The notes beneath the pieces are model-generated. The model searched no databases, was not told where the DNA came from, and saw nothing but the letters and a program-made list of their open reading frames with translations. Positions 13,001 through 37,109 of a stretch of DNA of 64,000 nucleotides are shown one piece after another. The stretch is from Eutreptiella sp. 'Long Island Sound 2002'. Lineage: Eukaryota > Protista > Euglenida. Each line of letters opens with the position of its first letter. Position 1 is the stretch's first letter. The stretch is taken from the NCBI GenBank assembly GCA_964036045.1, contig OZ038378.1, forward strand, positions 195,362,001-195,426,000, in the 5' to 3' direction. A program made the position numbers and the translations under genes.

Positions 13001-16000
13001 CATCCCTGGAAACTCGTGGTGCCAAAAAGTTGGGCTTTTGGCTGGTTCATGGGCATGGACAATTTGTGATGTGCACAAGACGTCCATGCTGATCCAACGG
13101 TATGTCCAGGAACTACGGGCGCAGGACGGTTGCTGCTGCTGTTGCGGCTGTTGCGCAAGGGGCGGCTCCACTGCACACCAGGGGCTGCCCCACCGCACCC
13201 TTAATATGACTGCATAGGCTATTGCTTGCAGTCCTCCATTGTTGGCTGTCACTCGCCAACGAAAAACCAAAAACACACAGGACACGATGGGAAAACCAGG
13301 CAAAATCGCATGCAAAACAAGGCAAAACCAAAAACGGGAACGTAGAAAAAAAACAGAAAATGCATCAAAACGTTGTTATTATGATTTGACCAAAACGTTG
13401 GGCAAAATGGGGGGGGGGGGCGTAGGGATGCGGTGGCCCAAGGAGGAGAGCAGGGAAGAAGAAGGCAACAAGAGAAGGGTGGAGAGGGGCACGTTTCCTG
13501 GATAGGCACAGGGTGTACGGCCGCATGCACCTGAAAAGGGGCAGGTTTGCGCTTGAGGGTGCGGGGCAGGGGTAGCCCCGCAAAGAGACATTCCGCCCCA
13601 TCTGCGTACATCCGCCACCAACGTCCCACCAACCGTTTTGCAACTGCCAGACCTCGACCCTCTTCGCTTTGGCAACCACCAGCGGCCGCTTTGGCACCTG
13701 CTTTTGAAAACCCCCCCTCCAGCCTCCTGACCCCTCAGGTGCATAAATCACAAGGTGATGGCGCAGCATACCCACAAGCAAATCCACAAGTTTGTTGTCC
13801 CCAGGACCGTCATGCAGCGTGAGTGCGTTGATGTCATCCCAGGACCGCGTGTCAGTTAGAAGCTTCGCCAGACCCCAGAAAGTCCCACCCCCAACTGACG
13901 TCCCAGAAATACGCTGGAACTTGTTCTGCCCCGTCACCTGCAGCGATAGGGGCACCATGAGCATGGAATGCGCAAAAGCCTCCACACACTTGTGGATTTC
14001 CGCGTCTGGATGGGCAACAATAGGTGATACCACTGGGGGGAGTCCTTGAACCGGGAAAAAAAAAGCATTTGGCCACAGTGATGCAGCACTCAGCAGCAGT
14101 CAGTCAACGAACAGCGCCTGGCCCAACAGCAACAACAGGCGGCTGGTCACTGACAGCAGTTGCTGGCTATGCCACAGCGCTTTGCAACTGACCGTCCACC
14201 GTTGATGGCTAAACGATGACATTCTCGCCAGGCATGTGAAAAATACAGGAAAAAAAACCTAGGCATGCTTAAAATAAGGTATTTGGCCATTGTGAGTGGT
14301 CACAATATCGGAAAAAAAATGGTCAGTTTCAGAAATTTCCATTTTAAACCCCTTAAACCCCTCCCCCCTTCTGATACCAAATGGGATGAAAAACACATAA
14401 GAGGGCCTAAAAAATCCATTACACGAGACATATGGTCTATGTGAGTGGTCACAATATCAACAAAATTGGGCTTTGGAAATTTGCAGTTTTGAGGGTGCAA
14501 AACTGCGGTTTGTACACTGGTGCCTTGGGAACCCCCACCCCCAGCACCCAATCCCCCAATACAGCGGGGGTAGGTTTCGTGTCTAGTCAGTTTCGCAGCA
14601 GTAAATTTCGCAGTGGAAAATTTTGCGGACAGTCCCAGAAATGTTGTGGTGTCTAGGGCATTGCGGGCTCGGTGGAGCTTAGCCAGAGGTGTCATTCACA
14701 ATGCAGGAAAGACCCACCACCAATACTCCGCCAGTGATGAGGGTCAAGTTGGCCTCAGGCCTCAGGCCTGACATGTGTTCAAACTCCCAAACTCCAAGGG
14801 GACTCCAAAAGCACCTGCCTACCACTGCGTCACCGCCAGAAAAGGTGCGGCCAGCATGTGGGAAATTTCTCAGAAGCCCTTGGATTCTCCGTGGTAAATT
14901 TGGCGGCCAATTTGAAACGCCAAATTCTATGGCCTTCGGCAAGGCACCTCGAAGAGAGACTGCAGTCAGTTAGTTAAGCTGATAGTCAGTCAATCAGTCA
15001 GTCGGTCAGGCAAGCAGTCAGTCAGGCAGTCAATCGGGCAAGCAGGCAGGCAGACAGGCGGGTAGAAACACACAGTTTGGCTTTTTGGTGGGGGACCCAA
15101 AAATTTGTGCACCAAAATGGCCCAACCAGATTTTCCCAATTGTAAGTGTCGTTTTTCCCCACGATGGTCCCTTTGGTTTGGGGGGGGGGGTACCCCCCCT
15201 GCCCAAATGGTGCACGGCCATTCTAATACTTCCCTGCTCGGGACTCCTCAGATGGGGATAGCATAGTAGATGGGGGGCGGCGGGGCAGGCCCACCTTGAG
15301 GATACTGACCCCAGATCCGATATTGACCACGATGTAGGGGTACACTTTATCCAGCTTCACGGCGTGCCGCTCCTTCGTCTGCAGGTCCACTGTAAACACC
15401 TGCCAGGAACCAGCGATTGCGCGGAGGTGCAGACAAGAAGTCCATGGGGACAGACGGGGATTGGCGGAGCTAGAGGCCGTGCGATGCAATGGGAGACACA
15501 GGGAGCGCTAGGAGAGGAGGGTGTCCGGTCAGGGGCTGCCTCGGGCTCGAGGAAATACCTGGGGGCGCTTCAGAGCAAACAGAGGGGGGAGGGGGATTGT
15601 AAGGGGGTCTGGATAATGAGGGAAACAATCGCACTGCGTACCCCGCGTATCGCACCGCGTGCTAGGTCTTCATTGCTATTTTACGCACTTTTGGCAGATT
15701 TCCAGGGTGGCAGGGACGCGGTGGCCTAAGGGGTTAGCATACCTCAAACGAAGCCTCCACTCTACCTCCTCACCAATGTCATGGTGGTGGTCGCCGCCCA
15801 AACCCCGTGCTGCGGGGAGCCTTTGAGCATAGAGTACCAAAATAAGGATGCAAAGGTAGGCTTGTGGGACAGTGGTGTTTTCCTGCCCGCAGTGACTAAA
15901 TGAATAAATAATGCATTCATAACACAGAACCAGATACCGTGCCCACTGCGCATCGAGGGGGGAGTTGACCCTCCTCCTTGTGAACGCTTTAGGCAGCGCC

Positions 16001-19000
16001 AGGCCACTACAACACAGTGACACGGCTGTTCGTATGTCTGATGGAATGAGGAAACCTCAGAAACAGTCACAAATGGGATGAGTGGAAATAAAGAAGAAGA
16101 CACAAACTGGCCCCGAAAAAAGCTCCAAAAAACGTACTCCTATCCATAGTGAACAAACGTGGCAATAACTCTCAAAATAACATGGGGGTGCGACTGATTT
16201 GGCTGGGGGGAGGGGTTCAGGGCGTGTGCCAGGGTTGTGGTGGTACTGCTGGATCCTGCGCCATTCTGTGCGAGAGAGTAGAGGTGGGGGGCTGCGCATG
16301 GGTGCCAGGCACTTAAGACTCTGGGTTTTTGGTAATGGAATTATTTTGGCGCCAATTGTGGGGGGGGGGGGAGGGAGCAATGAAAGTCCACTTTATTGCG
16401 GACTCTTCCTAAATAGCAATTTGAATACGCTTGTGGTTGTTGGCTTTGTGTGCAGCCATATCATCACACAGATCAAGCAGCACGCCCTGCAATGATGTCC
16501 TATAGATACCATGTTGATATATCTTTAGGTTGCACATACCCCCCCACCCCCAAGGGCCATGATGCTTACTTCCGACAGGGGGGGGGTCCAGCGACTGGAG
16601 GGGGGGGGGGGTTGGGGGGGCATGATTCGTCTTTCCGGGTTGGGCGGCCGATGACACGCGCACAGGGGGGCGACGACTCGAAATATCATCAACTTTTAAC
16701 AAAAACTTTTGTGTGGGTACTTTCCAGCCTGTGCACCTGCTTGAAGCATCATATGGACGCATGCTTTGCACCTATTGCGTCTTTGTGATGGTTGTGGAGC
16801 TCACCTTGGCCACTGCTGTTTTGTGAGTTTCAAATTTTCGGTGATTCAACTGCGTGTGCTTCTCCAACTGCCTCCAGGGGGGGGGGGGGTGGCACAAGGA
16901 CTTGGTGGTTGGCTCCAGGGGGGGGGGAGGTGATTCTCCTTTCTGGATCGGCGGGGGGGGGGGATTGCCGGGGGGTCCATTGCAAGGGGGGGGGGGAGGG
17001 TTGTTTGGGGCCCTGGCCAGCCCCGGCCAACCCACCCACCCTCCCACATCAGAAAAATTTTCCTCGGGCAAAAAATGAAATGTATCAAAGGGCCGGAAAT
17101 TTGAGGCCGATTTAAGGTACAAAAACTTTTTTTTTGGCCTTTGACCCCCCCCCCCCCACACCCCCTCACCCCTGGGGGAGGGGGGGGGGTTGTCCATAAG
17201 CAATAGCCTGGTCCATTGCCGGGGGGGGGGACGGGGGGCGCAGAGACCGTGACTCTCATGGACGTGGGCGTGCCTTGGCCAAACTTCGACAATGCTCGTC
17301 ACCCTGCGGAATCCATCCCGTGAACACTCACGGCTTTGATCGGGCGTGGCTTTGGCAACAAATCAGCGATGGTCCCTACCCTCCAGAACCACCCTGACAA
17401 CTCACTCAGTGCATTGTTAAGCAATGTCAACAAAGCGGCGAATGTGTGTGGGCGGGTAACGGCGCCCGTTGCCCCCCGCCGCGGGATTCTGATGCCAAAG
17501 AGATGGGTTGTGTGATGGGTGAACTGCCCACGAACCCGAGGTAAGTACACTGTAGAGTGCCTGCCAAGCCAGAGGCATGGACAGAATTCTCTCGACACAT
17601 GGAAAGTAATACTACGGCGCAGGCCCGTTTCAGGCTATTGCTTAAGGAGCCCTAGTGGGGGATTGTTTGGGGTGGCCCTGGCCGACCCACCCAGCCCCCC
17701 CACATCAGAAAATTTTCCTCCGGCAAAAAATGAAATTCATCAAAGAGGACGGAAATTTGAGGCCGATTTTGGGGACACAAACTTTTTTTTGGCCTCTGAC
17801 CCCCCCCCACCCGGGGTTTTTCTGCATAAGCATTCGCCTGGCCCCGTTTGAATGGCACTCTCGGCAACCAGGTGGTTGCACTTCATCTGGACAGCCAATC
17901 CCTTTCCGGTCAGCGCCAGCAGAATTCAGGAGCTTTGGTCATTTCATGTTTTTGTTCAGAAGACCACAAAATTGTGCTCCCTCTGGCCTAAGCACTGCAC
18001 ATAGCCTTGGAAGTAAAGGGCAGGTACGTGGGTGTGTCTTCCACCGTCACATCTGGCGGGACTGAGCTGGGATCCACCCCTGCCACCCCGGCCGGCGCAC
18101 CTCATCTGGCTTTGTGTGCAGCAGGAAATTGAGCCCACGGATCAGGCACTCCATCTCAGGGTGAGGTTGCAAAGTGATGCCTGTGGAAGCACAGGCTGGA
18201 ATTCTGCATCCGAGCAAAGAGCCATGAGCAACTTTCCTTTACTCTGAAGCACCCCAGTTTCAACAGGCAGATTGTTCACCTCCTGTGGCAGCAACCCCCT
18301 TTCTGGGAGCCCCAGGACAAGGTCCCTCCCTCCCAAAATCAAATGAAAGATCAAATGGGCGCTGCATAAATGCATCTTATTGGAAGGGTGCCGTGTCCCT
18401 GACCGAGAGACTTTGCGATGCTCTGCATGGCCAACCGTTTGCCTTCGCAGTACTGTTCGCCTTCCCTTGAATTCTCTCCCTCTGCATGCATCCGGCATGG
18501 CTGGCATTGATTGTCGAATACTGGGGTCGGAAAATTTCGTCTGGGACAATTTGGCGGGGAACATTTTGGGAGGGAAAAATTTCGACACACCTCCAATTCT
18601 GGTGCAGGGCCATCATACACCGGAAACTTCGACACCCCCAACCCTTGGTTCCTTGTGGACAATCAGTTGTATGAAACTTTGGCAGGCACAAATTTTGAAC
18701 AACACCAAATCATCCGACCACTCAAACCAAGCTCACAAACATTTTCGATGAGGACCAACTTGTCACTCCCAAGCAAGGAAGATAAAATGGACGTGACAAA
18801 CGGGCTGACTGCCGACAACAGCGCAACAATACCTGGCTACCGCCGCCACTGAGGATGCACAAACAGCAGGAAGTGCCCCAAATTGTGGAAAAAAAAAACT
18901 CGTAGGGAAAATTTCCACACCAACCTGAAAAACGAAGTTTCCCAGTGAACTTGTCCCGTGACGAAGTTTTCCCACCCCTGTAACCATGTGAGCTTGCCAC

Positions 19001-19186: not shown

Positions 19187-19196
19187 CTACAACAAT

Positions 19197-19227
<31 letters not shown>

Positions 19228-19403
19228 GCAGCAGCAACAACAAGAACAAAGACAACAACAACAACAGCAGCAGCAGCAGCAGCAGCAACAACAACAACAA
19301 CCACAACAACAACAACAACAACCACAACAGCAGCAGCAGCAGCCGCCGCAGCAGCAACAACAATAACAGTAGCAGCAGCGACAACAACAACAAGAACAAA
19401 CAA

Positions 19404-19434
<31 letters not shown>

Positions 19435-22096
19435 CACACCACCGAGTCACTTGGACCATCACGTCCCACTTCAGGCTTTATTCGACTCTACCCATGTTTG
19501 CCATGTGGCCTTCTTTACCCCAGTGTTGCCTCAGAAATGCCCCAAGAATAATATTATCCAAAAGATGATCAGTTTCGACCACTTTTGATGCTCAAACAAA
19601 CGCTTTAACTCGTTTTCAGCCCATTTTTGGCCTGACTTTGAGCCCTTCAGAGTCCAGAAATACCTTGGAAAGTGGCCATCTGGGGACCAACAACAGGTCA
19701 ACAAAACGGATCAAACATATCGTCTTCCCAAAGCGATCTCAGACCACTTGGCATACCCACTGCAGTATTTTTCGTCACTTCAATTGCATTGTGGCCCAAT
19801 TGAAGCCCACACAAAACGCGGTGAAAACAGGCCATTTTGTGACCAAAAAAGAGCCGCAAGCCCGTCGTATCGTTGCCGTGTGAAACTCCCACAGCACAAT
19901 TTCACACAGCACAATGGGAAAGCACTCTCAGCAACAGCACGGCTCGCCATTGGCACAACGTGGTCATGCAGAAGCAAACGTTTTGTAAGTCCCCGTACAC
20001 CTCTTTTCGCTTGTTTGTGTCTGTGATTAAGCTGTGGAACATCCCATCCCCTGTGCCCATCTGAATGATCCATTGGGGTGGCTCCTGTGACGTATAGCCT
20101 CAAAATGGCATCTCTGAGGGCCAAGGGTGCGTATGCATGTTGGGGCACTGTAGACAGACCCAGCATGGATTTGATGGTGGCGGCATATTTGAAAGCGCCC
20201 CCACCCGTCGCATTCATCTCCCGCATGTGCTCATGGTTGAACTTCCGGTGCAGATTGTGCTTGTTCACAAAATCTGCAAATTTGATCTGAGGAACGGGAG
20301 TCATGCATGGAGCAAACGATTGAAGGCTGGAGATACAGCCTCCAGCTCCCTCGTACTTGAAGAAAATTGGCGGAATAAAGGGATGGGTGAGACCGAATTG
20401 AGGCGAGCCAAGCGAAAGTGTAGGTGGAATCTTTGGTAGAATCATTTTGTGTTACAGAGCCACCTCCCAAGAGCTACTGGATTGCAACCACTCTGAGGCC
20501 CACCACTGCAAAAAAGAGCTGGCTTGTGAAAAACGCAGCGCCGAACCGCACCGTCAGAGCAAGAACCCAATCAATATCTGCTTTGCAGCTGGTGTCAAAG
20601 CAAAAAAAAAACGGTTGGAGAAAACTCCTTAGGAGCTGCAGAGCAGGCGCAGACGTCATTTGGTCTGTTGATAGAGATGGCAATGTGCAGCCCTGGACTA
20701 TGGGTTTGGTGTGATACAGTTTGCACCCTCACCTACTTCCCACGGCCGATCTGCACTGATCAATGGACCAGGAAATCATCCACCGACGAGTTCGTGTTCA
20801 GGACTGACCAATGCCACCAGTGTAAGGTGCAACCACCGAACCACAAACACACAAAACGGTGTGGCCCTGGCACGCAGCAGACACGCACGCGCGCGTGTGC
20901 ACACACACACACACACACAATGAGAACCGCAAAAACAAGAACAGAGCAAGAAAAGCGGTGAAAGAAAACTCCTCAGGAGCTGCAGGGCAGCCCTAGAAGT
21001 CTTTTGGTCTGGTGACAAATGCAGTAATGTGCAGCGCTGGGTTCGGTTAAAGTTCTTCCCTTGATCCCTGCCCTGCTCCTGAAACTGTGCTGCACTACCA
21101 ACAGACCATAATTCACCTACAGAGGAGGTCGTGTCTTAACGTCCAAACTATGCAACCTGTGCTAGGTGCTTCCACCTAGCCGCACACACACAAGAGGGGC
21201 GTGGCTGGGAGAATGCTCACGGGCCTGTCCCACGAACACGCAGCAAGTGTATGTCTGTGCTCCAAGTCGGCTCGTACCCCTCGGGCCGTCGTTCTGTGTG
21301 TATCACAATGTCTGTGTAGTGTTTGTTGTTCCATTTGGCATGTCGCCCAAACCAGTGCATCATTTTTGTGACCACATCGGACTGTGCACATGGCTGGTGG
21401 TGTGCTATTGTATAGTGTATTGTATAGTGTTTTCCGCGTTCCATGGAACGCGGAGTACACACAGCGCACTGATTTGTGCATCGCGCGCATCACCGTCATC
21501 CGTGCGTAGTCGCCTACCAGTGCAACTTGTGCCCATGCCAGAGCTACAGAATCTGGGATGCCCAGCTGTGCAGCCATGGCAATGCAGCCGTCGGGCTGCT
21601 GGTAAAGATGCAGGCAAGGTATTCTGGGGCTGCACAGCTGGGCGATATTAGTGGTTTCCCATATCTCAGTGACCAGTCCTCCTTCAACGCAGAGGGGTGG
21701 GTGGTGCTCAGTCCTACTCCCTCCCCGACTGTCATGCTGATTCCCAAGGCTTGTGCTGTTTGTGACACACACATACACACACACATACACACATGTTGAG
21801 AACCGCAAAACAAGACCAAAGCAAGAAACGCGGTTGAAGAAAACTCCGTAGGAGGTGCAGAGCAGCCCTAGACGTTGTTCGGTCTGTCAAAGAGTGCGCT
21901 AAGTATGGCAATCACAATGGTGGCACAGACCGTCACCAGACCTAAATAAATCCACGGAGGAGGTTGTGATTGTTCACACCAAAAAGCCATCTACTTACAA
22001 TGCAAACTGTGTTGGGTGCTCCCAGCCAACCACACACACACAAGAAACATTCAGGGGTCAGAACCATGGACCAGCCGGCCAAGGAGGGCTGCATCG

Positions 22097-22168: not shown

Positions 22169-25112
22169 CACATCATCCAAGGTCAACGATGCAAGGTACC
22201 CACCCGCACAGCCGCGGCATGACGCTCTGAACGAACCCTAATATGATCCGCGTAAATGGAGGCCCTGAAGTATTTGATGGTGAGGCTACAATGCTTTTGC
22301 GCCATAATGTATGCTCTGGTTCCAAACCTCGGCACACCCTCGACCAAACAGCAAAGCGTACCACTTTGCGCGTCGGCATCTTCAAGAAGGTCAGTGTGCC
22401 AGCTCTATCAGCCTCGGAATCGTCAGTATCAAGGCCCTGTTGCAAAGGGAGAGGTGAGCCCCTCTGAAAGGGCTGGGCTGTGCATTTGAGGGTGGGTTCT
22501 ACTCGTATCATCGCCAGTCTGCTGGGGAGGCCCTGGCCTGCATGAGTCCTGAGGCCGTCTTGTTTGGAAATGGCGGTGCTTTGGTCAATGGGTACACATG
22601 GGGGCGTGTACAGCAGAAAAAGCTATTGCCACCGGTGTGGTTGTTCAGGGGAGGGTCACAGGTGACACGTCGTGCACTGACATTCTTGGCTTGTGGGAGC
22701 AAAACCTTTGCTTGGTAACAACTGAGTCACAATAGCTGTCTCTTACAACCCCCCCCCCCCTTGTTCTTTGTGCTTGTGTGTGCACGCGCTGCACTATTGA
22801 TGTGGGCAGGCGTCTTTTATAGTCCGGGACACTCTTGGGAGACCCATGCATATTTAGCTCCGATGACAGAAAACCGCCCCCCGGGGCGTTGCTTGAGCGG
22901 AGGGGGGAGGGGGGGAGGGGGTCCAGGGGAGGGGGGGAGGTGGTCCAGGGGGGGGAGCCCCCCCCCCCCCCCCCCCTGCCGGAATGAACCATATCGGCCA
23001 AGAATTGCAAAAATGCACCACATTGACCCATTCAGTATATACATTTGTCATAATGTCTGAACACAGGTAATCAAATCATCTTTTTGGGTCCATACATTGT
23101 GCCCTCACCTAAACACCACCAGGCAACACAAACAGGAAACATAGTGGAATGCTCATTGTTATCAAATTGTTTGCTGAAGATCAATCAGAGTTGGACTTGC
23201 ATGAGCAAAACTCATGCGGCAGGCAGCGCACCTCGCGGTCTTGGCGTGCCATTACGGCTGCTTGTGTTATAAACTCATGCAGAGTTGCCATTGGAGTGTT
23301 CAGAAACAGTGTGGAACATGCTTTCCGTGCCACATTATGCGCCTCTTGCCTTTCCTTCCCAGTCCATCTATCTTGGAAACGAAAATAGAGGATCGCGTTT
23401 ACAACGTCGTCGCGTTTTACGCGGGGACATGGTTGGACCGGGGTGCCGAAGAACGCACTTATGGGACGCTGGGACATGGTGTTTGCAAAAGAGGGAAGAA
23501 AGGATACAGTGGAGTGACCAAAGAACCCTGCTATAAGTGTGCCGAAGGCGCGGAGGAAAAAATTGGCCCATACGAAAAAACATTCCCAAAACCCTGATTC
23601 TCAGGTGAATGAGAGTGGAGGGGGGAGGGGGGAGGGGTTCCAGGGGAGGGAGGGAGGTGGTCCAAGGGGGAGGACCCCCCCCCCCTGCCGGAATGAAAAT
23701 TAAAGCAACGCCCTGACCGCCCCCCCTCTCCTGGGTCAGAACCTCGGGATGAGGTTTGGAGCTACATCTCTCCGTTTCCGCTCTCCCGTGCCTGGATATG
23801 TTTTGTGGGTAGGTCTTCGCTCTCTTGATCTGTCAGTCCAAGTCGGACTGGTGCCAGCAGAAACCTTGGTAGTTTGTTGGGGAGCAGGAGTGACTGGTTG
23901 CACGGATGCCCATATTCATGTCAGCTTGCTGAGTGGCTGGGGTGTGCACATGGTGCCCCTTGGGCAGCAGTGTCTACTTCCCGCTGTTTGTGCAGCACGG
24001 GCAACTCAGTAGCTCGTGTTCCTGGCAGAATGAATTGTTGTCTTTGCAGCAGAAAATCATCCACACGGTGGCCCACAGAGCAGTGGCTTCCAGTGGCTTC
24101 GATCCGTTACATGTGACTGAGCACACATGTGTACATGTGGGCCTACATGCCTACATGCCTGTGTGCATGTGTGCACGAGCATGTGTGTGTGTGTGTCTGT
24201 GTGCGCGTGCTCGCCCGCGTGTGCGTGAATGTGCCGAAGGCGCTATTACCATCAGGCAATGGCCGGGATGTCATACCAGTGGAAACTGGTAGACGGGTGG
24301 GCCCCCGACGAACAGATTTGTCCATGCATGTGTTTATAATCACTGTCACTGTTATCTGAGGAGCAACTAACATTGCTACTGCCACTGCTGCTGGAAATAG
24401 GTCTGCAGCACGACAGCAGCAAACAAAAACATTGAAACATTATAGTTCGCAAAAAATTCCCACTGTCACTGTCACCGTCAGTGCCAGCTCCATCTGTCAC
24501 TATCAATTACAAACACGTGCTGCAGTGCGGCACTTGGCCGTCATCCCCATCTGTCACCCACCATGTGTCGCTGAGTGACAGATAGCCAGACTCCCTCCCA
24601 GCCCCCCACCCCCAGCAAGAATTTTGACCTGTTCTTATGGCTATCCCTGATATGTATGGCTTGCTGAAGCACAGGTGCCTTGGCATTAACTCTTGTCGTC
24701 CTCCCACACCCTCCTTCTGTTGGCTTCTGCACTTAATAGTGGTGTGTGTGGGATATTTGTATGCCAATTGCCCATTGCCCCGCCGCAGGGGATGATTTCA
24801 TGTCATTCAGTGCATGCCTTTGGCAGTCTGGAATGCCATTGTCCAACATTGATGCTGATATCATCTGGCTTGGATATTGGGTTTCGCCTTCAGGTCCCTG
24901 TCCCCAATCTGGCTCTGGATTCCGCAATTCGAATGGCCCTTGCTGCTTCCTCTTGCTCCTGCACACTGCAACCCATGCTGTTCCATCTCTGTCACTGTCC
25001 AACGCTTGTATGCACATGTATGTGTGTGTGCCAATTGCCCCACCACGGGGGTGTTTTCATCGCCTTTAGTTCTCGCCAGTGGCAGTTCTTTGAAGTCCAT
25101 TGATGTTCTAGA

Positions 25113-25161: not shown

Positions 25162-28100
25162 TGTCTGTCAGAACAACATGGGCCATCCTGACACACCTTC
25201 ATTGTTGGGGAAAAGAAATGCATGTGTTTGGGAATTGGTACGAAATCGGCAGCATCCTTGCGGGCAAACCGCGGCACTTTCAGAGCTGCTGGGATATTCG
25301 GCGGATGGAAATACACCATCTTGGCATTTGACCCTCCTGTACAAAGTCAATGCATGTGCGGGTTTCTAGTTGGTGAAAAATGTAACTCGTGTACAAAAAA
25401 AAAATCGTCGAGTCGCGACGTGACGATTGTTTTTGTCACATGCATTTACCGCAAAAAGAAAATTACACGAATTACAACACACACTTCTCATTGGGGTGTG
25501 AATTGAAATGAAGATGTTGCATGTGAAGATGCACCCCTCCTTACGAGGTTAACGAGATCGATATTGCGCTGCATGCAGGCAATAGAGGAACATTCGCCGA
25601 AAATTCATTGGCACCAAACACACCAAAAATCCAAAAATAGCACTTTGTCATGCAGTGCAAGCGGTAGTGCGTCATGGCTGCAAGAAAGCACCTCAGACTA
25701 CAAGATTGAGATCAGATTGAGATGGATCGAGGTGACAGCCCACAAGGCTGGGCATGCAAAACCAGGCAAACTGTGCACCACGACAACACCTGGCTCACCA
25801 GACACGGTCTTCCATGGACATACCGGCTCGGCAGACAAGCGGCTGGCCGCTGAGCCGCTCGTCCAGTTCATTCTGGCAATCCCCCCTTTGTGCAAATGTA
25901 ACGGTAATCTCAAGTGTCCTTTTACCGCCAAGCGCCCTTTTACCGCCAACTGTCCTTTTACCGCCAAGCGTCCTTTTACCGCCAAGTGTCCTTTTACCGC
26001 CAAGCGCCCTTTTACCCCGAAGCGTCCTTTTACCGCCAAGCGCCCTTTTACCGTCAAGTGTCCTTCTACCACCAAGTGGACTTTTCCAACCAAAACATAA
26101 CCCCATTTCTTTTAGCACGTTTACTTGTTGACCGTGGGAGGAGGGCGTAGGCAGTTTCTGTGGTCAGGACAGCGTAGCATGACATGCATGACCCCACTAT
26201 TGCGGGAAGGGGTTGGTCGCGCCACGGGTTGGGCTTGAAGGGGAGGGTAGCCCCGCGCCCCCTCTCTTCCTCAGCCTTTTGCGTACAAAGAGGGGAACAT
26301 TGCCTCCCGTTTGGGATGACTGTCAAGCACATTGCTGACATGAGACCCTTCAGAGGCATAACCCAGCCAGCCATTGCTCAAGCACCGCACAGGGTGCACC
26401 AAGGCTGAAGGAGTATGCAGGTTGGTACTTCCGGGTGTAAAGGGTTAGCCTTTTGACGAGGGAATCCTCCTCAAAAGGGGCGGGGGAGTCTTCATGACGG
26501 AGCGTTTCCCTGGTGCACACCCAGCGTGTTACTTTGTACCAGGCTTCGTGACTTAAACCCCAGCTTTACCCTTCCCGAGAGTAACCCACCAAGCAGACCA
26601 GAATCAACCCCAACCCTTCTCTACAGAGCACACAACATAAGACCAAATCTGTGATTTCCAGTTGCTCAACACACGTGACATAAATTGTGGCCAGAACACA
26701 ATTTTGTCCCCACAAATGTGCGCCTACGGAAGCAACAATGCTCCAAATCTGACCCTGGCACACCAATGTCAATTGCGACAGGCCCCTTGATCACGTATGC
26801 CGGGGGAATCTTGCCGATGGGATTGATGTTGATTTGAATGAGGAAATATACGAACCCTGCGAACAAACAGGACATGAGGCGGTGTGCTCACGTGACACAA
26901 GTGACAATGGCTTACCACACGCACATGCACAGTGCACAAATTCTGTCGGCAACGGAAGCGATGGCTGTCTGATCTTGGCTGTATGCAAATGTGGTCTTGG
27001 CTGTGCTCCAACAGTTGTGGGGCATACATGCTGGAGGGGTATGTTGTAAAGGGCATGGGGCCTCCCCCCCTCCCCCCCTGCAAGAGCAACACCAAATTTC
27101 TAAAATCACCTCAAAGAGGGTTGTTAGATCAAGTGCAGGTGCAGATGCCTTTTCACCCCCTATTTGGGGGTCATTCGTGTTGGATACCCCAAGGTATGGT
27201 ACCAGATGATTGATCCCGTGTAAAATCATCATTTTGGAAGAGAAAATGATCCCCCACTGGTGCTCAAGTACCCATATTGTCACCAAATGATCACCCAAAC
27301 CCATCCCAGGGGCGACACACAGGTTTTGGAAAAAGTCAAAATTTGAAATTTCTCAAATGCCACTAAACAGCCTAACCAGGTGAAAACGGCTAAGTACTCA
27401 CTGGCAAGTGGGGGCATACTGGGGGGGGGGGGGGGGGCAACTCGGGGTGCCCGGAGTTGGGACCCAGAACCCCTGCCATGGGTTAGGGGGTCCACAGACA
27501 AGAAAAAAGTTGTTCGGGACCTAGGTCTAAATCCACAGACAGTGGCCGCAATGTGCAAAGAAGTTTTGACACCTCCTCACACCACACCCACCGCACCCAA
27601 AAAGCGGTACCCGGGTACCGGGGTGTAGGAGGGTCAAAATCGAAAAATTCACCCACGCAGTGGCAGCTGCGCCCATGTAGCCCGAGCCATGGGCCCCAGA
27701 AGCCCTAAAATTGCTGTAGCTCCCTGACCTCTGTACATAGGCCAGTGGACGTTAATCGACAAATGCCCAAAATTGCTGTTGTGTAGGCTGTTTAGTGACA
27801 CCTGCAAATTTTTCAAAATTCGCCTTTTTTTTCCAGAAACCCTTCCGTCGCCCTTGGGATGGGTTTGGGTGATAATTTGGTGACAATACGGATACTTGAG
27901 CACCCACAGGGACCCATGTAGTGGCCGTTAGGCCCATGTAGCCTGAGCCATGGCCCCCCCAAAAGCCTCAAATTTGTTGTTTGCAGGTGGTTCAGTGGCA
28001 TTTAGAGGGGTGTTTGCGCGTCGCCCAGGGTTTTGCTTAGCCACCCTAGGGGGGGGGGGGGGGGTTAATTCAGGGACCCACCCACCCAGAATTTTGGCAT

Positions 28101-31100
28101 ACCCACAGACCGACAAATGTCCCACCCCCCCCCCCCCCCAGGGGGGGGGGGGGGCTGACACCCACCCACCCACCCACCCATCCTAGCCCCTTTATGGGCG
28201 TGGGGCAGACACAGGAACTGTGGGGTTCTAGCGTTACCCCCTCCGCATCCGGCACAAAGCACAAACAATCCTAGCCCCTTTATGGGCGTGGGGCAGAGAC
28301 AAGAACTGTGGGGTTCTAGCGTTACCCCCTCCGCATCCGGCACAAAGCACAAACAATCCTAGCCCATGTTACACGGAACCTGCAACAGAAGAAAGAAAGA
28401 AGTGGCACTGGCTCAATAGACCCAAGGCCCCCACAAAGTCCCACCCTACCCCGGGGGGGGGGGGGGGGGGTTGGACACCCACCCACCCTGAAATTCTGCC
28501 AGACCCACCCACCCACCCCCCCCCCAGGGTAGGGTAGGACGGACATTAAGCAAAACCCTAGCGTCGCCCGCCCAGCATGCTACTTTTGTATTAAGTATCC
28601 CGGCTTTAACCCCGGATTTACCCTCCCCCCCAAGTTGACCAATTGGACTGCACACCTTCCCTACAAGCACGCTGCACAAGTTGAAATATTTGAATTCAAC
28701 AACAATCCGTATCCATCATGTATTGGCTAATAAACAACTTGTTCCCCACAAGTGTGGGCATAAATACATTCGTCACAATAATGCTCATGGCACTCACCAC
28801 AAACTGTGATGGTGGAGCGCTTGTGACAACACAACGCACACACATCTGCCCCATCCTCTCCCTCATCTTGCGTGACAATTGAGTTGCTTTTATCGGTCCA
28901 AACATGAGGCGGGACATGGTCCCATGGCCCATAAGGAGGGTGACGGACCTGCCTCCGAATGCAAAATTGTGTGAAATGCAACAAAACACGCACGGACCTG
29001 GCGCAACTCATTGGGGCCGCCACGCCTCATGTTCCTAACCAAACCCCAATGCCACACTTGTCCAAAGAAATGCTCAATGCGTGCCCTATACCACCCATGC
29101 ACATCATTGTACGACTGTTGCCGGGCTGTCAAAGTTCCATTCGTTCTTCCAATCAATGGCACAATGACATCAATCCGGCCTTTATAAGCGCCTTCTCGTT
29201 CTCCCCATGGTGGGGATAGATCAACATGGCTACATTGCCCCTGCCCTGCGGGTTCCCGATGGTGTTGAGAAAACAAGGATGGGAAATGGATAAAAATGGG
29301 TGACGATGCAAATGCCACATCCAAAATGCATCGCAAGCAAAAAATAACCCTGGTATGGAACAAAATACTTGTGGAAAGGGGCATTCCCCATATCCCCAAC
29401 TGGAAAGGGGCCATGCAAAAAGCGTGGATCACGGCTCCGTATCAAAAGTGGCCCAAAAAGATGCCCGCCGTGCTGCCGCCGCCCCTTTGGTGTGCGCACA
29501 AATTGCATAAGCAGTTTTCCACCCTTTGCAGCTCAAAAATGAATTTTTTCAATTTTTTTTTTGATATTCTGACCATTCACAATAGTAAAATATTCTATGT
29601 AAAGCATGTTTCAGACCCTCGTTGTGTGTTTTTCACCCTATTTGGGTGTGGGGGGGGGGGGGTCACAAGGGGGCTGGGGCACAACCTTCTTATGCATTTT
29701 TCCACTCACAGCTCAAAAACAGAAATTTTCAAGTGCCCCCTCTCTCTTCGAGGTGTCTTGCCAATAGGCAATAGAATTTGACAGAAACAAACCCCAAATC
29801 TTAGGTACCCCTCCCTAAACTTTAGGTAACCCCCCTGAACTTTAGGCACTCCCCCCAAAACATTAGGTAACCCCTCCCCCAAAACTTTATGGACCCCCCC
29901 CCAAAACTTTAGGTGCCCCTCCCCCAAGCTTCAGGTACCCCACCCCAGACTTTAGCTACCTCCCCCCAAACTTTAGGTACCCCCTCCTCAACGTTAGGCA
30001 ACCCCCCCCCCATCTTTAGGTCCCCCCCCAAACTTTTGTTACTCCCCCCAAACTTTCAGAAGACACAAGCGGTGACCGTTGCGTCGCAAATGCACTAGTC
30101 TTCAGGTGATTACCCAGTCTCCACCTCCGAAGGACAAGAAGGGATAAAAGTGGAGAAAAAACTTGGTATTCAAGGGCCACAGTTCCAAAAGTTGCGGAAA
30201 CAACACCTATCATTTCTCCGACAAGGGCATTGCTCTGGCGGGGGGGGGGGGGGCCTGTAGAGAAGCCCCACTGCAGACTAGAAACTTGCCACCCTATCAA
30301 CCAAATCAACCCCAAAATCGTCCCTGTACAGCACACAACAAAACACCAAATCTGCCATTTCACATTGCACAAATCATGTGACACTCACTGTGCCTCGTTG
30401 GCTCCACACATCTATGGGTCAATGCAGTCAGCGCAGTAGCTTTTCTTACATTCACTACAACGTGCGGTGGTTTGCTTTGACAGCACAAACGTCAACCTCA
30501 TCCCCATCATGCTACTTCGTGGCATCAGTGTTGGTCGCACAAGAGGACACAGGAAGGGTTGATTGGTCCCATGGTCCAACAAAATGTAGCCAGACGTGAG
30601 CACCACGTCTGCCTTTTGAACTTCACCCATTTTCCCCATGCCCATGAAGGTCTTGAGAGCGGAGGGGAGTAGCATGGCTATATAGCCCCTACCATATTGA
30701 GGTCTCTAAAGTGGGGAGGTGTAATGTGGCTACAAAGGTTTTCTCATTGGTGAGACATGTCCGGGGCCTGTTCGGCGCCTGATCCAAGAGTTGTGGTGTC
30801 TCAAGGGTTTTTCCTCGGACTCCTCAAGTTCAGACTCAGGGAACCAGGCGATTTCTTCATCCTCTAAACCATCACCAGTGCACTCGTCGTCTTCTGTACT
30901 CAACTCTGCCAAGGGCTCTTCCCCAAAAGCACATGCCACAACACATTTCGAACCTCATAGGCTCTAGTATTGTGAACTGCTGTCGAAAACGGATTAAAAA
31001 ATGGGTGGGGGACTGGCTGCAGTCTGTGACCCCGGACCTGTATCCTGCCCTTATGCCTCTTCTTGCAGCTGCGGTTTGCTCTGCTGATGTCGCCTGCGGT

Positions 31101-33114
31101 TCTCTTGAACGCCTGTCTGTCTGCGGGCCCTCGCAGCCGTGCACTGGCGATGGCAGCAGCGGATTCCCTGCGCTGTGCGAACCCTGGGCAGCTGCTCCGG
31201 CGGCAGGTGCTTCTGGTGCCATCTCCCGCCACTGCCCAAGAAGCTTTAAACGCCACCCAGTGCACGCCTGGTGCAGCAACGTGCCCCCAGGGGGCATGGA
31301 GCTTGGAGCTTGGGGCATGGCAGAGGGCATGGGGCATTCCAGGGAGCATGGAGCATGAGTAATGGGGTTGGGTGGGGGGAGGGCTTTCCAGGGGGCATGG
31401 GGCTTTGGGCATGACAGGGGGCAGGGGGTGTTCTAGGGGGGGGTGGCAGGGGGCACAGGGCAGATGGTGCTTGGGGCATGGCAGAGGGCATACATGCTGC
31501 AAGGCCAATGATGATGATGATTCTCAGAATCACTCCCCACGATAGTGATGAAGCTGCAGTAAACTGACAGGGAGAAAACAGTGGGAAAAGGTCAGAGTTA
31601 ACGTTCATCCCGTGCTGTTGGTCTGTGTGCAGCCTGAGCCCGGTATGAGGAAGGCTAAAGCCATAAATGATGGCGTGCCAGACATCGCATGTGGTCTGGT
31701 GCACACTAGCAATGCCTCAGCTCATCGGGTTGCTATTCTGTCATACCTGCAACCCGCTTTTCACACGCTACCCAAAGATGATGTGATGCGCGACATAGGC
31801 CACATTTTGTTGCAGAGTAGCCCCCCATGCACCAGCACGCCCGAAATCATGAGAAACAACTTCTTCGCAGCCATGACGGACTACAACCGGGGGCGCAAGG
31901 AAAGCGGATGTATAGCTAACTCATGGGCTCTGTAACAGGCCCCCATGCAACCAATTAAAAGAGCTGTGGGTGGATGAGGTCCCCACTGCAATGTTAGAGC
32001 AAGAGGCTCATGGTAATAAGGCTGAGGTTTGCTTTGAGGTGGCTTGGCCATGCCTGCTTGTGTGTGGCATCCTGCTTCACATACTGCTCTGTGCACATGC
32101 TGCACACCATCGTGTACTGTGACAGTGTCATGCTGGGCACTCCATTCTTTAGCCCCCCTTGAAAGTGCCTAATGTGCTGCCACCATGCCCCAGAACCCCT
32201 TTTTGTCGCGAATCCTGCCCCTCTTTCTGGCCAGTGTAAACATAAATCAGCGCAAGCACACAACCTACGCACCATTGGCACTACTACCCCCATACCTCAT
32301 CTACGGTGTCAATGAGAGATGTGGTGTTTACGGCGTAGTAAAAGGACTCGTAGAAAGACATACTCAGGCGGTCTTTCAAAAGCATCTGTGCCATGGGAGT
32401 GGGGCAGGCACGGACCATCACCGACTGCAGCTGCCTTTTTCCATCTGATGTCAATTTTGCTATTCTCTTGAAAGTGAGATGGGGTTGTCAGTGGCTACAG
32501 TCGTGGGCATATACCAAGGCTTCCATTCGAATCATGCTCAAACTGCGAGGTTCAACAATCCTACATCCTACATCGCTGCAATAACCTTGAGTTCGTAGTT
32601 CATGTGTGGGCCTTGCAGTAGCCCCTAGCACACTGATTCACTTCTATCTAGCCACCCATGTGCCGCAGACGTCACACTCACCATGTCACTCCAATCACCA
32701 ACAGCACCATTCACATCCATTCCCTTCAATTGGGGGACATTGCGTATTTCTAGATCCAACATCCCCCAAGTGTCATGAGCCTCTTGTGGGTTCATGATGG
32801 TGTCCACCTTAAACGGTTATGTGGACATGTGGCACGGCGCACTACCTTCTTTGGTGCAGGCACACCCTGTGCCTAGGTACACTAGGTTGAAGCACATCCC
32901 ATGCAAAGTGCAAGGCAATGGTCTTCTCAAAAGTTCCACCATCTGAACCTCTCTGCCGGACTGGCAGGCTTTTCATGCCGTGCCTCCACTATCACAATGA
33001 GGAGGCCAAACCATAAATGGGAAGAAGCTTGCCACCAAAACAGCTAGATTGAGCGAAAACCGCCAGATTGGTTCTAAGGCTGCAACTTCATCTCCACTCT
33101 GGGGCGTCCTTGCA
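3052..33114 (-). CDS. PANK: Type II (fumble-family) pantothenate kinase with N-terminal membrane module; at least 14 exons, about 610 aa, start exon unresolved
   Basis: Exons in transcript order: 33114-33012, 32385-32296, 30206-30125, 26856-26764, 25336-25197, 22436-22362, 20286-20160, 18180-18101, 15399-15295, 13937-13772, 8792-8559, 7217-7143, 5672-5415, 3245-3052 (TGA). All are bounded by AG/GT with compatible phases. Joined protein shows PanK-II motifs in order: AIDIG|GSNAKMVY, TGGGAFKY, EMECLIRGLNFL, VNIGSGVS, GTSVGGGTFWG, DLLVG|DIYGG, IASSFGK, MISNNIG|QVA, HDGYLGALGA. Three motifs are split across junctions, which supports the joins. Confidence 0.9.
5415..5672 (-). CDS. PANK: PanK gene exon: end of insertion plus FKSQDIVKSLFYMISNNI(G)
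   Basis: ccgcag| acceptor and G|gtgcgt donor; DIxxSLxxMISNNIG motif. Confidence 0.88.
6080..6241 (+). repeat. Dispersed ~165-bp repeat; other copies at about 16985-17160 and 17657-17813
   Basis: Shared core cccacatcagaaaattttcctc..gcaaaaaatgaaat..ggaaatttgaggccgattt..tttggcctctgacccccc. Confidence 0.85.
7143..7217 (-). CDS. PANK: PanK gene exon within the insertion: (D)KMQDCAATPTSPASPLKTPDNKKS(G)
   Basis: gtgcag| acceptor and G|gtattg donor; 75 nt, phase 1 to 1. There is no conserved motif and the exon could be skipped in frame, so support is weaker. Confidence 0.55.
8559..8792 (-). CDS. PANK: PanK gene exon: (G)DIYGGRD...IASSFGKA plus start of Ser/Asp-rich insertion
   Basis: caaag| acceptor and G|gtatgt donor; DIYGG and ASSFGK motifs. 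Confidence 0.88.
9118..9330 (+). repeat. Dispersed repeat with CAGT-rich tail; second copy at about 14926-15090
   Basis: Shared gccttcggcaaggcacctcgaagagagact..cagtcag..gaaacacacagtttggcttttt. Confidence 0.8.
13772..13937 (-). CDS. PANK: PanK gene exon: VTGQNKFQRISGTSVGGGTFWGL...VDLLV(G)
   Basis: ctgcag| acceptor and G|gtatgc donor; GTSxGGGTFxGL motif. Confidence 0.93.
15295..15399 (-). CDS. PANK: PanK gene exon: VFTVDLQ...YPYIVVNIGSGVSILK
   Basis: ggcag| acceptor and AAG|gtgggc donor; 105 nt; YPYxxVNIGSGVS motif. Confidence 0.93.
18101..18180 (-). CDS. PANK: PanK gene exon: (G)ITLQPHPEMECLIRGLNFLLHTKPDE
   Basis: ccacag| acceptor and GAG|gtgcgc donor; EMxCLIxG motif with the catalytic Glu. 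Absent from the ORF track. Confidence 0.9.
19130..19440 (+). repeat. Compound (CAA)n/(CAG)n microsatellite in a PanK intron
   Basis: About 300 bp of alternating CAA and CAG runs. Confidence 0.97.
20160..20286 (-). CDS. PANK: PanK gene exon: IKFADFV...NATGGGAFKYAATIKSML(G)
   Basis: cctcag| acceptor and G|gtctgt donor; TGGGA motif. Confidence 0.9.
22099..22165 (+). repeat. (CA)n microsatellite; others at 25113-25156 and (CT)n at 7023-7058
   Basis: Direct read. Confidence 0.97.
22362..22436 (-). CDS. PANK: PanK gene exon: GLDTDDSEADRAGTLTFLKMPTRKV
   Basis: caacag| acceptor and GTG|gtacgc donor; 75 nt; corresponds to the G-x-LHF-x-x-F strand of PanK-II. Confidence 0.8.
22881..23715. mobile_element. 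hAT-like MITE/deletion derivative in a PanK intron
   Basis: TIR core gggcgttgctt / aagcaacgccctg; 8-bp TSD accgcccc (22873-22880, 23716-23723). Internal ~85-bp G-rich direct repeats ending ctgccggaatgaa. Confidence 0.7.
25197..25336 (-). CDS. PANK: PanK gene exon: (G)GSNAKMVYFHPP...FSPTMK
   Basis: tacag| acceptor and AAG|gtgtgt donor; completes DIGGSxxKxVY. Confidence 0.9.
25915..26080 (+). repeat. 18-bp tandem repeat (ttttaccgccaagygycc), about 9 copies, intronic
   Basis: Visible periodicity. Confidence 0.92.
26764..26856 (-). CDS. PANK: PanK gene exon: (G)FVYFLIQININPIGKIPPAYVIKGPVAIDI(G)
   Basis: ttcgcag| acceptor and G|gtgtgc donor; supplies the DIG of the DIGGS phosphate-binding motif. 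Confidence 0.85.
27260..27903. mobile_element. Foldback/MITE with ~120-bp imperfect inverted arms in a PanK intron
   Basis: 27260-27378 (gtgctcaagtacccatattgtcaccaaa..ccactaaacagccta) is matched in reverse complement by 27781-27903. Confidence 0.75.
28180..28365 (+). repeat. 88-bp tandem duplication
   Basis: atcctagcccctttatgggcgtggggcaga..ggcacaaagcacaaaca occurs twice. Confidence 0.9.
28690..29440 (-). mobile_element. Decayed ISL2EU/Harbinger-like (IS5-related DDE) transposase with C-terminal Cys cluster
   Basis: GEREGAYKGRIDVIVP...QQSYNDVHGWYRARIEHFFG resembles DDE_Tnp_4 (GDxAY..P..YNxxHxxxRxxIEHxFG). The tail reads CALC..CGECHEHYCDEC. Confidence 0.65.
29795..30055 (+). repeat. Degenerate ~21-bp tandem repeat (tttaggtacccccccaaaac)
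   Basis: Visible periodicity. Confidence 0.8.
30125..30206 (-). CDS. PANK: PanK gene exon: VLFPQLLELWPLNTKFFLHFYPFLSFG(G)
   Basis: tag| acceptor and G|gtggag donor; phase 0 to 1, exactly as needed to link the 32296 and 26856 exons. Splice signals are weaker than average. Confidence 0.55.
32296..32385 (-). CDS. PANK: PanK gene exon: MLLKDRLSMSFYESFYYAVNTTSLIDTVDE (pore-helix-like)
   Basis: cag| acceptor and GAG|gtatgg donor; exactly 90 nt, phase 0 to 0. Confidence 0.65.
33012..33114 (-). CDS. PANK: PanK gene exon: predicted TM1 (..EVAALEPIWRFSLNLAVLVASFFPFM)
   Basis: Open hydrophobic frame ending in a phase-0 donor ATG|gtttgg. The acceptor is ambiguous (33114, 33132 or 33143). Confidence 0.5.
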
Positions 33115-35426: not shown

Positions 35427-37109
35427 TCACTCAGAGGACACTGTGACATCCACTGACAGCTCCAAATAGTAGCGCCCAGGGCGGTAATCCGCGTAACCAT
35501 CAGGGCGGTTGTTGTTGACGGAACAAGGCCCTGGAGGAGGGTTTGGCTGGTCCGTGACTGGCCGCCGCTGATCGTACAGCACCGAGTGTCCGTCCGGCGA
35601 GTACCATTTGTCATAATACCGGTTGGGATGCTGCTTGCTCGTGTTGAGCGTCCAGTTCTGCAGCCACACGTGCTCCGCGCCGAACTCGACATACGGCCCA
35701 TGGTCGCCGTAGAGCACGCGGCTGTAACCCACAGCCAACACGGAGCCGTCACTGGACCTGAAACTGGGGGGTCGCGTGCACCCGAACTCGGGCAACTTCC
35801 ACCGCGTCTCGAACGATTCCTTGTTCCGGCGGCGATTTGCGGTGTCGGCGGTCGACACCTGGCCGGGCGCTGGAGGCAAGGCATGCAGCAAAAAATCCTC
35901 TGGTTCAGCACACGCCGCCCCAGGCGGCCTAGCACCCGATCCTACCGGGCACGCCAACGCCAACGCCTGCCGCTTCCTGAGGTAGGCCGTGGCCTCGCGT
36001 TGCCGGAGTCCCACAAACTTGTTCGGCTCGGCAACCTGAACGTCGCTCAACGTGCCGGTATGGGGGTGTGGGTATCGCAACCGTATCAATGCCACAAACA
36101 AGCCTCGACAGCTCTTGTAACTCTTCGCTCCGGCGTCCGCGTTCGCGTTGCCGGCCCCGACGATGCTAAGGCCGTGCTGGTGCAACCGTGACCGCAGAAG
36201 GGCTTGGGTAACATCCGGGCATTCCAGGTCCAACGTTGTCAGATATCGCGCGGCATTACTCCTTGTCACCTCCACAACCACCCCTTCTACCTTGGCAGTC
36301 CGCCGTGCATCCTCCCCGCCAGATGCCCGCACTGGTGAGCCGTCGCGGACCGGTGTCCCGTCCCCCTCCGATCTGGCACTCACATGTTCGTGGGTGTCAT
36401 CCAGCGCAGGGAAGCGCACGCGCGTGCCTGGCGAACAACAACCTGATGGCAACCCTTGGATCACCACGCGGTACGTTGCGCACATGTGCCCTTGCAGGGC
36501 ATTGCGCTGCAAGGCCTCTAATGAGCTGTGGGTCTTCGCCACAAGCACAAGCCCCGATACGGAGCGACACAACCGATTCACAATCCTCGGTGAAGGCAAT
36601 GCGTCCGTCGCATTGGAGGCCGCCAAGCAATACGGGAGCGCTAAGGCCAAGGTGCAATGGCCTCGCATGTCAGCGACAACCCCCGAGTCCTTCCAAACGA
36701 CGGCCAGGTGGTTGTCCTCGCACAGCACACGTACCTCAAGCTTGTCCGTTCGCTCTGCAATGGCCCCCGAGTCGATGCGAAGCTGCACCACATCGCCTGC
36801 ACTCACAATCGTCGCGGAGTCCACCTTCACCACACCATTCACCTCCACATCGCCACGACGGATGGCCTCCTCACATCCTTTGGTTGAGGACAGATGGCCT
36901 CTAAAATGCTGTTTGCACACCTTTCGGAGTCGCAGATTGCCCTCCACAACTACATTGACATTAGCAAAGTCCAAGGGTCCTTCTGAGGGGTTTACCATGC
37001 CCTGTTGCTCGAGGGCAGGTGCAGGGTTTGTGTCACATGTGGGCCTGGAAGACAATGCATGTGTATCCTCTGACCCCCATCCGCAGGGCCATGAACAATA
37101 CTGAATCAC
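35427..37109 (-). CDS. Intronless S4 + RluA/RluD-family pseudouridine-synthase-like protein (probably catalytically altered) with unknown C-terminal domain; first in-frame ATG at 36998 gives 523 aa
   Basis: Single open frame. S4-like segment (EEAIRRGDVEVNG). RluA-order motifs: VLCEDNHLAVVWKDSG (cf. EDxxLxVVNKPxG), IVNRLCRSVSGLVLVAK (cf. VHRLDxxTSGLLLxAK), ATY, GLSIVG, LRYPHPHTG. Confidence 0.85.
   Translation of the reverse strand: MIQYCSWPCGWGSEDTHALSSRPTCDTNPAPALEQQGMVNPSEGPLDFANVNVVVEGNLRLRKVCKQHFRGHLSSTKGCEEAIRRGDVEVNGVVKVDSATIVSAGDVVQLRIDSGAIAERTDKLEVRVLCEDNHLAVVWKDSGVVADMRGHCTLALALPYCLAASNATDALPSPRIVNRLCRSVSGLVLVAKTHSSLEALQRNALQGHMCATYRVVIQGLPSGCCSPGTRVRFPALDDTHEHVSARSEGDGTPVRDGSPVRASGGEDARRTAKVEGVVVEVTRSNAARYLTTLDLECPDVTQALLRSRLHQHGLSIVGAGNANADAGAKSYKSCRGLFVALIRLRYPHPHTGTLSDVQVAEPNKFVGLRQREATAYLRKRQALALACPVGSGARPPGAACAEPEDFLLHALPPAPGQVSTADTANRRRNKESFETRWKLPEFGCTRPPSFRSSDGSVLAVGYSRVLYGDHGPYVEFGAEHVWLQNWTLNTSKQHPNRYYDKWYSPDGHSVLYDQRRPVTDQPNPPPGPCSVNNNRPDGYADYRPGRYYLELSVDVTVSSE

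Follow-up and report, generated by a model that had tools for sequence, protein, structure and literature searches.

A Euglenid Pantothenate Kinase Gene with a Conserved N-Terminal Hydrophobic Helix, a Probable Signal-Anchor

The window analyzed here is a 64,000-nt stretch of Eutreptiella sp. 'Long Island Sound 2002' (GCA_964036045.1, contig OZ038378.1, positions 195,362,001 to 195,426,000), and the gene under study encodes what is, by its sequence, a type II (Fumble-family) pantothenate kinase (PanK) with predicted activity. The gene lies on the minus strand from 32385 to 3052 (about 29 kb), in GC-balanced, intron-rich, eukaryotic DNA, and its 12 exons encode 543 amino acids. PanK catalyzes the rate-controlling step of coenzyme A (CoA) synthesis, and descriptions of the enzyme usually present it as a soluble or organelle-targeted protein. 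We consider it likely that this euglenid gene encodes a single-pass, membrane-tethered PanK in which an N-terminal hydrophobic helix serves as an uncleaved signal-anchor. The first-pass annotation of this DNA, which was confined to the 5′ fifth of the gene, had proposed a PanK fused to an ion-channel-like module with two transmembrane (TM) helices. An N-terminal hydrophobic helix was indeed found, but the supposed channel module arose from the incorrect choice of two exons, and the fusion is refuted.

Transcript Structure and 5′ End

Three RNA sources were compared with window positions 26700–32699: two estuary metatranscriptomes (X1 and X2) and one small RNA run from 2013 (X6) that derives from the source organism. 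In the word index, each covered a few percent of 26700–32450, and several 2024 runs, presumably DNA, covered most of it. One contig per RNA run was obtained, with 0 mismatches to the window. The X6 contig (345 nt) matched 32386–32296, then 31563–31493, then 26855–26763, and its last 70 nt had a unique placement at 25306–25335 and onward. The outer pieces were also present in the X1 and X2 contigs, again 71 nt apart, and both contigs showed depth in the 31500 bin. After the one-base junction ambiguities were resolved to GT-AG, the exons were 32385–32296, 31563–31494, 26856–26764, and 25336 onward.

These contigs retained two of the four in-frame mini-exons from which the fusion had been assembled (32385–32296 and 26856–26764) and lacked the other two (33114–33012 and 30206–30125). 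The splice 26764/25336 was recovered in frame, whereas the proposed junctions 32296/30206 and 30125/26856 were replaced by the 70-nt exon 31563–31494. Because both source exons are missing from the transcripts, the peptides IWRFSLNLAVLVASFFPFM and VLFPQLLELWPLNTKFFLHFYPFLSFGG lie outside the protein. The RNA depth near 30200 coincided with a poly-C repeat, where the DNA word depth was about 100 times that of unique sequence. No words of 33012–33114 were found in any listed RNA run and they were present in DNA runs, a weak test since six words were sampled. All sampled words of this segment were present in the 2024 run X9, which is labeled with a different organism code (organism B), and the value for the organism A runs was 0.67; the sample behind the assembly may thus bear another species label than the 2013 RNA runs.

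Beyond 32386, the X6 contig carried a 20-nt overhang, CTGAGTGTCTATTTCTTTTC, of which no copy was found anywhere in the window, even allowing two mismatches. The Eutreptiella spliced leader (SL) is 28 nt long, ACACUUUCUGAGUGUCUAUUUUUUUUCG; the primer used for the 454 libraries of the same study carried a C in place of one T of the T-run, ...CTGAGTGTCTATTTCTTTTCG (Kuo et al. 2013, PMC3621762). The overhang was the exact 3′ part of this modified Eut-SL primer. Therefore, X6 is SL-primed Eutreptiella cDNA, and the mRNA is trans-spliced at cacAG/ATG, where the leader is joined directly to the mRNA body. Mispriming is unlikely because the genomic sequence upstream of the acceptor is unlike the primer. 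In X1 and X2, which were not SL-primed, the genome match likewise ended exactly at the AG before 32385.

The spliced-leader site establishes where the mRNA truly begins. At the position where a junction 33012/32385 had been expected, the X6 cDNA carried the spliced leader instead. Since the leader itself lacks an AUG, the earliest one lies at 32385, leaving a 5′ untranslated region (UTR) of zero length past the leader; in this Eutreptiella, 18% of 5′ UTRs have fewer than 5 nt (Kuo et al. 2013, PMC3621762). The message opens with the leader, immediately followed by the ATG, and no upstream exon can supply a first transmembrane helix.

N-Terminal Helix and Linker

Residues 1–38 formed a tail rich in D/E and S/T with an NTT sequon, which is located 17–18 residues ahead of the helix in both Eutreptiella and E. 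longa. Residues about 39–63 (WGVILRIIIIIGLAAWFVYFLIQI) were strongly hydrophobic and constituted the single TM-like segment of the 543-residue protein. The best 19-residue window had a mean Kyte-Doolittle value of 2.59 and a summed Hessa-type energy of −2.3, and the next best reached +7.2. The helix was followed by a 17-residue proline-rich linker, NINPIGKIPPAYVIKGP (NINPIGKIPPAYVIKGPVA), and then directly by IDIGGSNAK, so that the first beta-strand and the DIGGS phosphate loop adjoin the linker. Before residue 120, in-frame methionines occurred at positions 1, 9, and 91 only. M1 and M9 alone precede DIGGS, so a catalytically complete product must contain the helix.

The helix was flanked by a charge of −3 (D, D, E) before it and +2 (K, K) after it. 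According to the positive-inside rule, such charges fit an N-out, kinase-in orientation. Because of these charges and the luminal-type sequon in the tail, we suggest that the tail would lie on the luminal or outer side of the membrane and the kinase on the cytosolic face.

Search for a Channel Module

The hypothesis that PanK is fused to a degenerate 2TM K+-channel (Ion_trans_2) pore module, which would oligomerize, conduct, or sense, draws on exon 1, which encodes S-F-x-E-S-F-Y-Y-A-x-x-T-T, superficially a K-channel pore helix, with a TM helix after it. This likeness did not extend to the orthologues. The segment SFYESFYYAVNTTSLIDT was not conserved, and E. longa reads SICEKSRDWMVQTANTT, in which the aromatic string corresponding to the supposed pore helix is SICEKSRDWMV. 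At the supposed altered selectivity filter, the window has NTTSLIDTVDE and E. longa has QTANTTLATST, and no T-x-G-[YF]-G-D was present.

At E ≤ 10, no Pfam family was matched by the exon peptides, and Pfam searches with the N-termini of the two Euglena orthologues (90 and 55 residues) gave noise only, with no Ion_trans_2. The exon 1 peptide had no match in a PDB phmmer search at E ≤ 10, and in the ESM Atlas it reached unnamed clusters at 0.75 only, with no K-channel. No Ion_trans_2 or KcsA match was found in Pfam, the PDB sequence search, the ESM Atlas, or the AlphaFold model of the E. longa orthologue. Two TM helices with a re-entrant pore helix were not found: the protein has one hydrophobic segment, and the AlphaFold model has no re-entrant loop. 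With the exons for TM1 and for the P-loop and TM2 also missing from the transcripts, and with the mRNA starting at the spliced leader, the probability of a channel-derived module is negligible. What is left is a generic TM anchor, except that this anchor is unusually conserved. In intron-rich protist genomes, a spurious domain can arise from phase-compatible GT-AG mini-exons picked by eye, as with the two incorrect ones among the four here.

Kinase Domain

In the minus-strand stop-to-stop frames, the classical type II PanK motifs were spread over the interval between about 26.8 kb and about 3 kb: AIDIG/GSNAK, NATGGGAFKY, EMECLIRGLNFLL, VVNIGSGVS, GTSVGGGTFWGL, DIYGG...IASSFGK, MISNNIG, and HDGYLGALGA. 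The claim that the PanK catalytic motifs are intact was upheld. In a 38-sequence PanK alignment, the 543-residue model retained all 33 invariant and all 37 near-invariant columns, including the ATP/pantothenate motifs DIGGS, ATGGGA, the catalytic Glu in EMxCL, NIGSGVS, R...GGGTF, DIYGG, and SSFGK.

The Pfam and fold searches were made on exon peptides and on the E. longa orthologue, which is 73% identical to the window model over residues 76–300, in place of the spliced 543-residue protein. The exon 12 peptide alone scored 84.3 bits against Pfam Fumble (PF03630; cutoff 28.5). The window open reading frame (ORF) P0002 also carries PF03630, and the Euglena orthologues scored about 370 bits on Fumble. 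The AlphaFold model of the E. longa orthologue was built from the 38-sequence alignment and had a mean predicted local distance difference test score (pLDDT) of 72. It contained a low-confidence helix at 3–25, a confident helix at 41–65 (pLDDT about 85), a short linker, and the kinase domain, whose best PDB matches were human PANK1/2/3 and yeast Cab1 (E 1e-29 to 1e-25). The E. longa model has the ASKHA-type PanK fold. Residues 315–451 formed a long low-confidence, presumably disordered insert.

In the window, an insert of about 100 residues lies between SSFGK and the DIVKSLF helix (8720–8559 and 5672–5470, minus strand). It consists of an acidic, serine-rich half followed by a basic half, with AlphaFold pLDDT below 50. 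Its first half is about 70% identical in E. gracilis, and the Entosiphon insert differs in sequence.

Conservation and Distribution of the Anchor

An HMMER scan of 1.84 billion representatives with exon 9 returned 561 PanKs. The closest representative, the Entosiphon PanK (P0010), starts at a Met after DIGGS and is uninformative on the anchor; a word search with it led to the E. gracilis protein EG_transcript_3070 (EukProt EP00667) and the E. longa protein GGOE01007007 (EP00668). The window model was 69% identical to EG_transcript_3070 over residues 35–543. From IGLAAW to KGPVA, covering the helix and hinge, 32 of 33 residues were identical between Eutreptiella and E. gracilis, with a single K/R change. 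The helix and the linker of E. longa each had one further difference. In E. longa, the tail before the helix has 41 residues with about 30% similarity, and the spacing between its NTT sequon and the helix is nearly the same.

The distribution of the anchor was examined in 108 PanK homologues that extend far enough to include the DIGG region. In the 70 residues ahead of DIGG, a TM-like segment was found only in the three euglenophyte proteins, in Pythium insidiosum GLD94405.1, and marginally in one JGI metagenome protein; the helix and linker were absent from about 95% of the set. In the Pythium and metagenome proteins, the N-terminal hydrophobic stretch is followed by a polybasic cluster and is unrelated to the euglenid anchor, although the arrangement follows the same principle and so favors the signal-anchor reading. 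The diplonemid PanKs (Diplonema, Lacrimia) had no upstream TM-like segment. A second E. gracilis PanK, EG_transcript_15000, is among the TargetP-predicted mitochondrial proteins (PMC6366073, supplementary file 7), and EG_transcript_3070 was not found in the supplements of that proteome paper. Given this second PanK, the diplonemids without the anchor, and the distant TM segments of the kinetoplastid-type proteins, we conclude that the anchored form is a euglenophyte paralogue. Two proteins from large ENA contigs (P0013, P0223) have the DCGG-type P-loop common to diplonemid PanKs and may represent the EG_transcript_15000 paralogue.

A search of a 5.8-billion protein set with the exon 3 ORF returned the window's own ORF only and no transcript-derived N-terminal fragments. 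An exact look-up of the contigs encoding the E. gracilis and E. longa PanKs for 5′ ends found none on record. No relevant paper on a membrane-bound or transmembrane PanK was found in the literature searches. The TM-anchored PanK appears to be undescribed, and the Euglena orthologues are unannotated transcriptome ORFs.

Proposed Function and Alternative Explanations

The pre-mRNA receives the euglenid spliced leader by trans-splicing at the AG preceding 32385, and translation starts from the adjoining ATG. We propose that the helix would then act as an uncleaved signal-anchor tethering the kinase dimer to an endomembrane, most plausibly that of the endoplasmic reticulum (ER). At the cytosolic face of this membrane, the kinase would phosphorylate pantothenate, the first step of CoA synthesis. 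An uncleaved signal-anchor is favored because the helix is about 25 residues long, has no obvious cleavage motif, and is separated from the kinase by 17 residues; the flanking charges and the sequon of the tail also favor it. The helix may also bind a specific partner within the membrane. One example would be a pantothenate transporter, which would couple uptake to phosphorylation; another would be a sensor of acyl-CoA or lipids through which CoA synthesis is regulated at one particular membrane of euglenophytes. This extension is suggested because the helix and hinge are far closer to identity than the whole protein, and we hold it only as an unlikely possibility. The existence of a euglenophyte-wide PanK paralogue with a highly conserved membrane helix points to a spatial organization of the first step of CoA synthesis in these algae.

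Several points weigh against the proposed signal-anchor. An Arg is located at position 44 within the hydrophobic stretch, and the helix may be cleaved as a signal peptide. The E. gracilis ORF starts seven residues before the helix, so the tail is perhaps dispensable or was mis-called there. The spliced-leader evidence comes from the SL-primed library X6, to which X1 and X2 add indirect support. For exons 5–12, the support is homology only, and the junction between exons 10 and 11 is tentative.

The hydrophobic segment could instead be a cleavable or transient targeting signal (for the ER, as part of a euglenid plastid presequence, or for the mitochondrion), leaving a mature PanK that is soluble in an organelle. 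Euglenid plastid proteins enter via the ER using N-terminal hydrophobic signals, human PANK2 is organellar, and the position of the helix so near the N-terminus of the E. gracilis ORF would suit such a signal. However, 38–41 residues precede the helix in Eutreptiella and E. longa, a hydrophobic core of about 25 residues is long for a cleaved signal peptide, and no small-residue cleavage motif follows it. Class I and II euglenid plastid presequences consist of a signal peptide and a hydroxylated transit region of about 60 residues, with a stop-transfer helix in class I. Residues 1–30 do not resemble a signal peptide (summed energy at least +8.5), and the 17 residues between the helix and the first kinase strand leave no room for an S/T-rich transit region of that length. 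The helix sequence is also far more conserved than is usual for targeting peptides, and E. gracilis has a separate PanK with a mitochondrial prediction. We regard a targeting signal as improbable. It is very improbable that the N-terminal exons derive from a different transcript or from chimeric contigs and that the true PanK is soluble and starts near exon 3. The transcript contigs are short (265–345 nt) and of low depth (2–7), but three runs of different studies share the joins with 0 mismatches, the independent cDNA assemblies of E. gracilis and E. longa show the helix contiguous with the kinase, and no in-frame ATG lies between the helix and DIGGS.

Exon Model, Introns, and Neighboring Sequence

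The gene model was guided first by a Planoprotostelium PanK and then by the E. gracilis orthologue, using tblastn and GT-AG sites (Table 1). All 12 exons had cag or aag acceptors and gt donors, and the frame was open over 543 codons, ending in ...GALGALLS-stop.

Table 1. Coordinates of the PanK gene features and of two segments formerly taken as exons.
Feature	Window coordinates	Strand	Evidence
Trans-splice AG acceptor, end of outron	32386..32387	-	X6 contig with SL overhang; X1/X2 genome match stops here; mRNA body from 32385
Exon 1: ATG right after spliced leader, residues 1-30, tail with NTT sequon	32296..32385	-	X1, X2, X6 contigs, 0 mismatches; cag/ATG, GAG/gtatg
Exon 2: tail end and first half of TM helix; overlooked in the first-pass annotation	31494..31563	-	X6 contig between flanking exons; X1/X2 71-nt spacing and depth; cag acceptor, gtatg donor
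Exon 3: second TM-helix half, proline-rich linker, kinase start (AIDIG)	26764..26856	-	X1, X2, X6 contigs
TM helix coding part 1, from about residue 37	31494..31545	-	Hydropathy scan
TM helix coding part 2, to about residue 63	26828..26856	-	Hydropathy scan; 20/20 residues identical in E. gracilis
Exon 4: GSNAKMVYF... to ...FFSPTMK	25197..25336	-	5′ 70 nt joined to exon 3 in X6 contig; 3′ end by homology and GT donor
Exon 5: GLDTDD...TLTFLKMPTRKV	22362..22436	-	tblastn with E. gracilis PanK and GT-AG; homology only
Exon 6: NATGGGAFKY motif	20160..20286	-	tblastn and splice sites; homology only
Exon 7: PEMECLIRGLNFLL	18101..18180	-	Homology only
Exon 8: VVNIGSGVSILK	15295..15399	-	Homology only
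Exon 9: GTSVGGGTFWGL	13772..13937	-	Homology; 93% identical to E. gracilis
Exon 10: DIYGG...IASSFGK and start of acidic, serine-rich insert	8559..8792	-	Donor tentative (phase and gtatg consensus)
Exon 11: basic insert part and DIVKSLFYMISNNI	5415..5672	-	Homology; acceptor tentative
Exon 12: C-terminal Fumble segment and stop codon	3052..3245	-	Pfam Fumble 84 bits, E 1.2e-23; 92% identical to E. gracilis
Former 'exon 1' (supposed TM1), outside mRNA, outron or intergenic DNA	33012..33114	-	Transcript contigs, SL junction
Former 'exon 3' (supposed P-loop and TM2), intronic	30125..30206	-	Skipped in all three transcript contigs

High-copy repeats occupied 27100–29700, in the large intron between exons 2 and 3, as well as 32500–32700, with a DNA word depth of 10^3 to 3.6 × 10^4 compared with about 8–12 in the unique flanks. 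These repeats also occurred in the metatranscriptomes, and G/C homopolymer runs break the contigs. An intron ORF at 28890–29432 looked transposase-like by eye and was set aside, as it had no Pfam match. The intron between exons 3 and 4 contained a tandem array at 25800–26100 with a period of about 18 nt, which reads as KRPFTA/KCPFTA units in one frame. A long GCA/GCT-type trinucleotide run at 18950–19450, in the intron between exons 6 and 7, reads as poly-L, poly-C, and poly-A/V in three frames.

A 560-codon open frame was located at 35427–37109 on the minus strand, with weak S4 and PseudoU_synth_2 matches (23.6 bits, cutoff 26.8). The PanK outron starts downstream of this frame on the same strand, which fits co-directional, possibly polycistronic transcription.

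Comparison with Known Systems

The euglenid PanK has the same catalytic domain as human PANK1-3 and yeast Cab1 (Fumble, PF03630). Those enzymes are soluble or have cleavable or regulatory N-termini, whereas the euglenid protein carries, 17 residues ahead of the kinase, a TM helix that looks uncleaved, and it has an extra insert of about 100 residues between SSFGK and the next helix, disordered in the orthologue model. EG_transcript_3070 of E. gracilis and GGOE01007007 of E. longa are orthologues with the same helix, linker, and insert; in the tail before the helix, similarity is down to about 30% in E. longa, and the E. gracilis ORF lacks this tail.

A PanK domain after a predicted TM segment also occurs in Pythium insidiosum GLD94405.1, the JGI metagenome PanK, and Perkinsela KNH01755.1, with anchors unrelated in sequence. 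In the giant kinetoplastid-type proteins that combine Exo_endo_phos, AMP-binding, and PanK domains, such as that of Papus ankaliazontas, the TM segment is hundreds of residues upstream, beside the other domains. These kinetoplastid-type PanKs (P0022 of Papus ankaliazontas, P0048, P0020, and P0064; P0018 of Perkinsela) have 900–1600 residues, with Exo_endo_phos, AMP-binding (acyl-CoA-synthetase-like), and TM-like segments before Fumble. The likeness to the KcsA/Ion_trans_2 pore consists of a short aromatic-rich motif, T-T, and a TM helix; the euglenid PanK is without TM1, a filter, and any hidden Markov model, sequence, or structural match.

In microsomal cytochromes P450, an N-terminal hydrophobic helix, basic residues, and a proline-rich hinge hold a cytosolic catalytic domain on the ER. 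The layout of this signal-anchor is like that of the euglenid PanK, which adds a tail of 38 residues; there is no sequence relationship, and the likeness is one of analogy.

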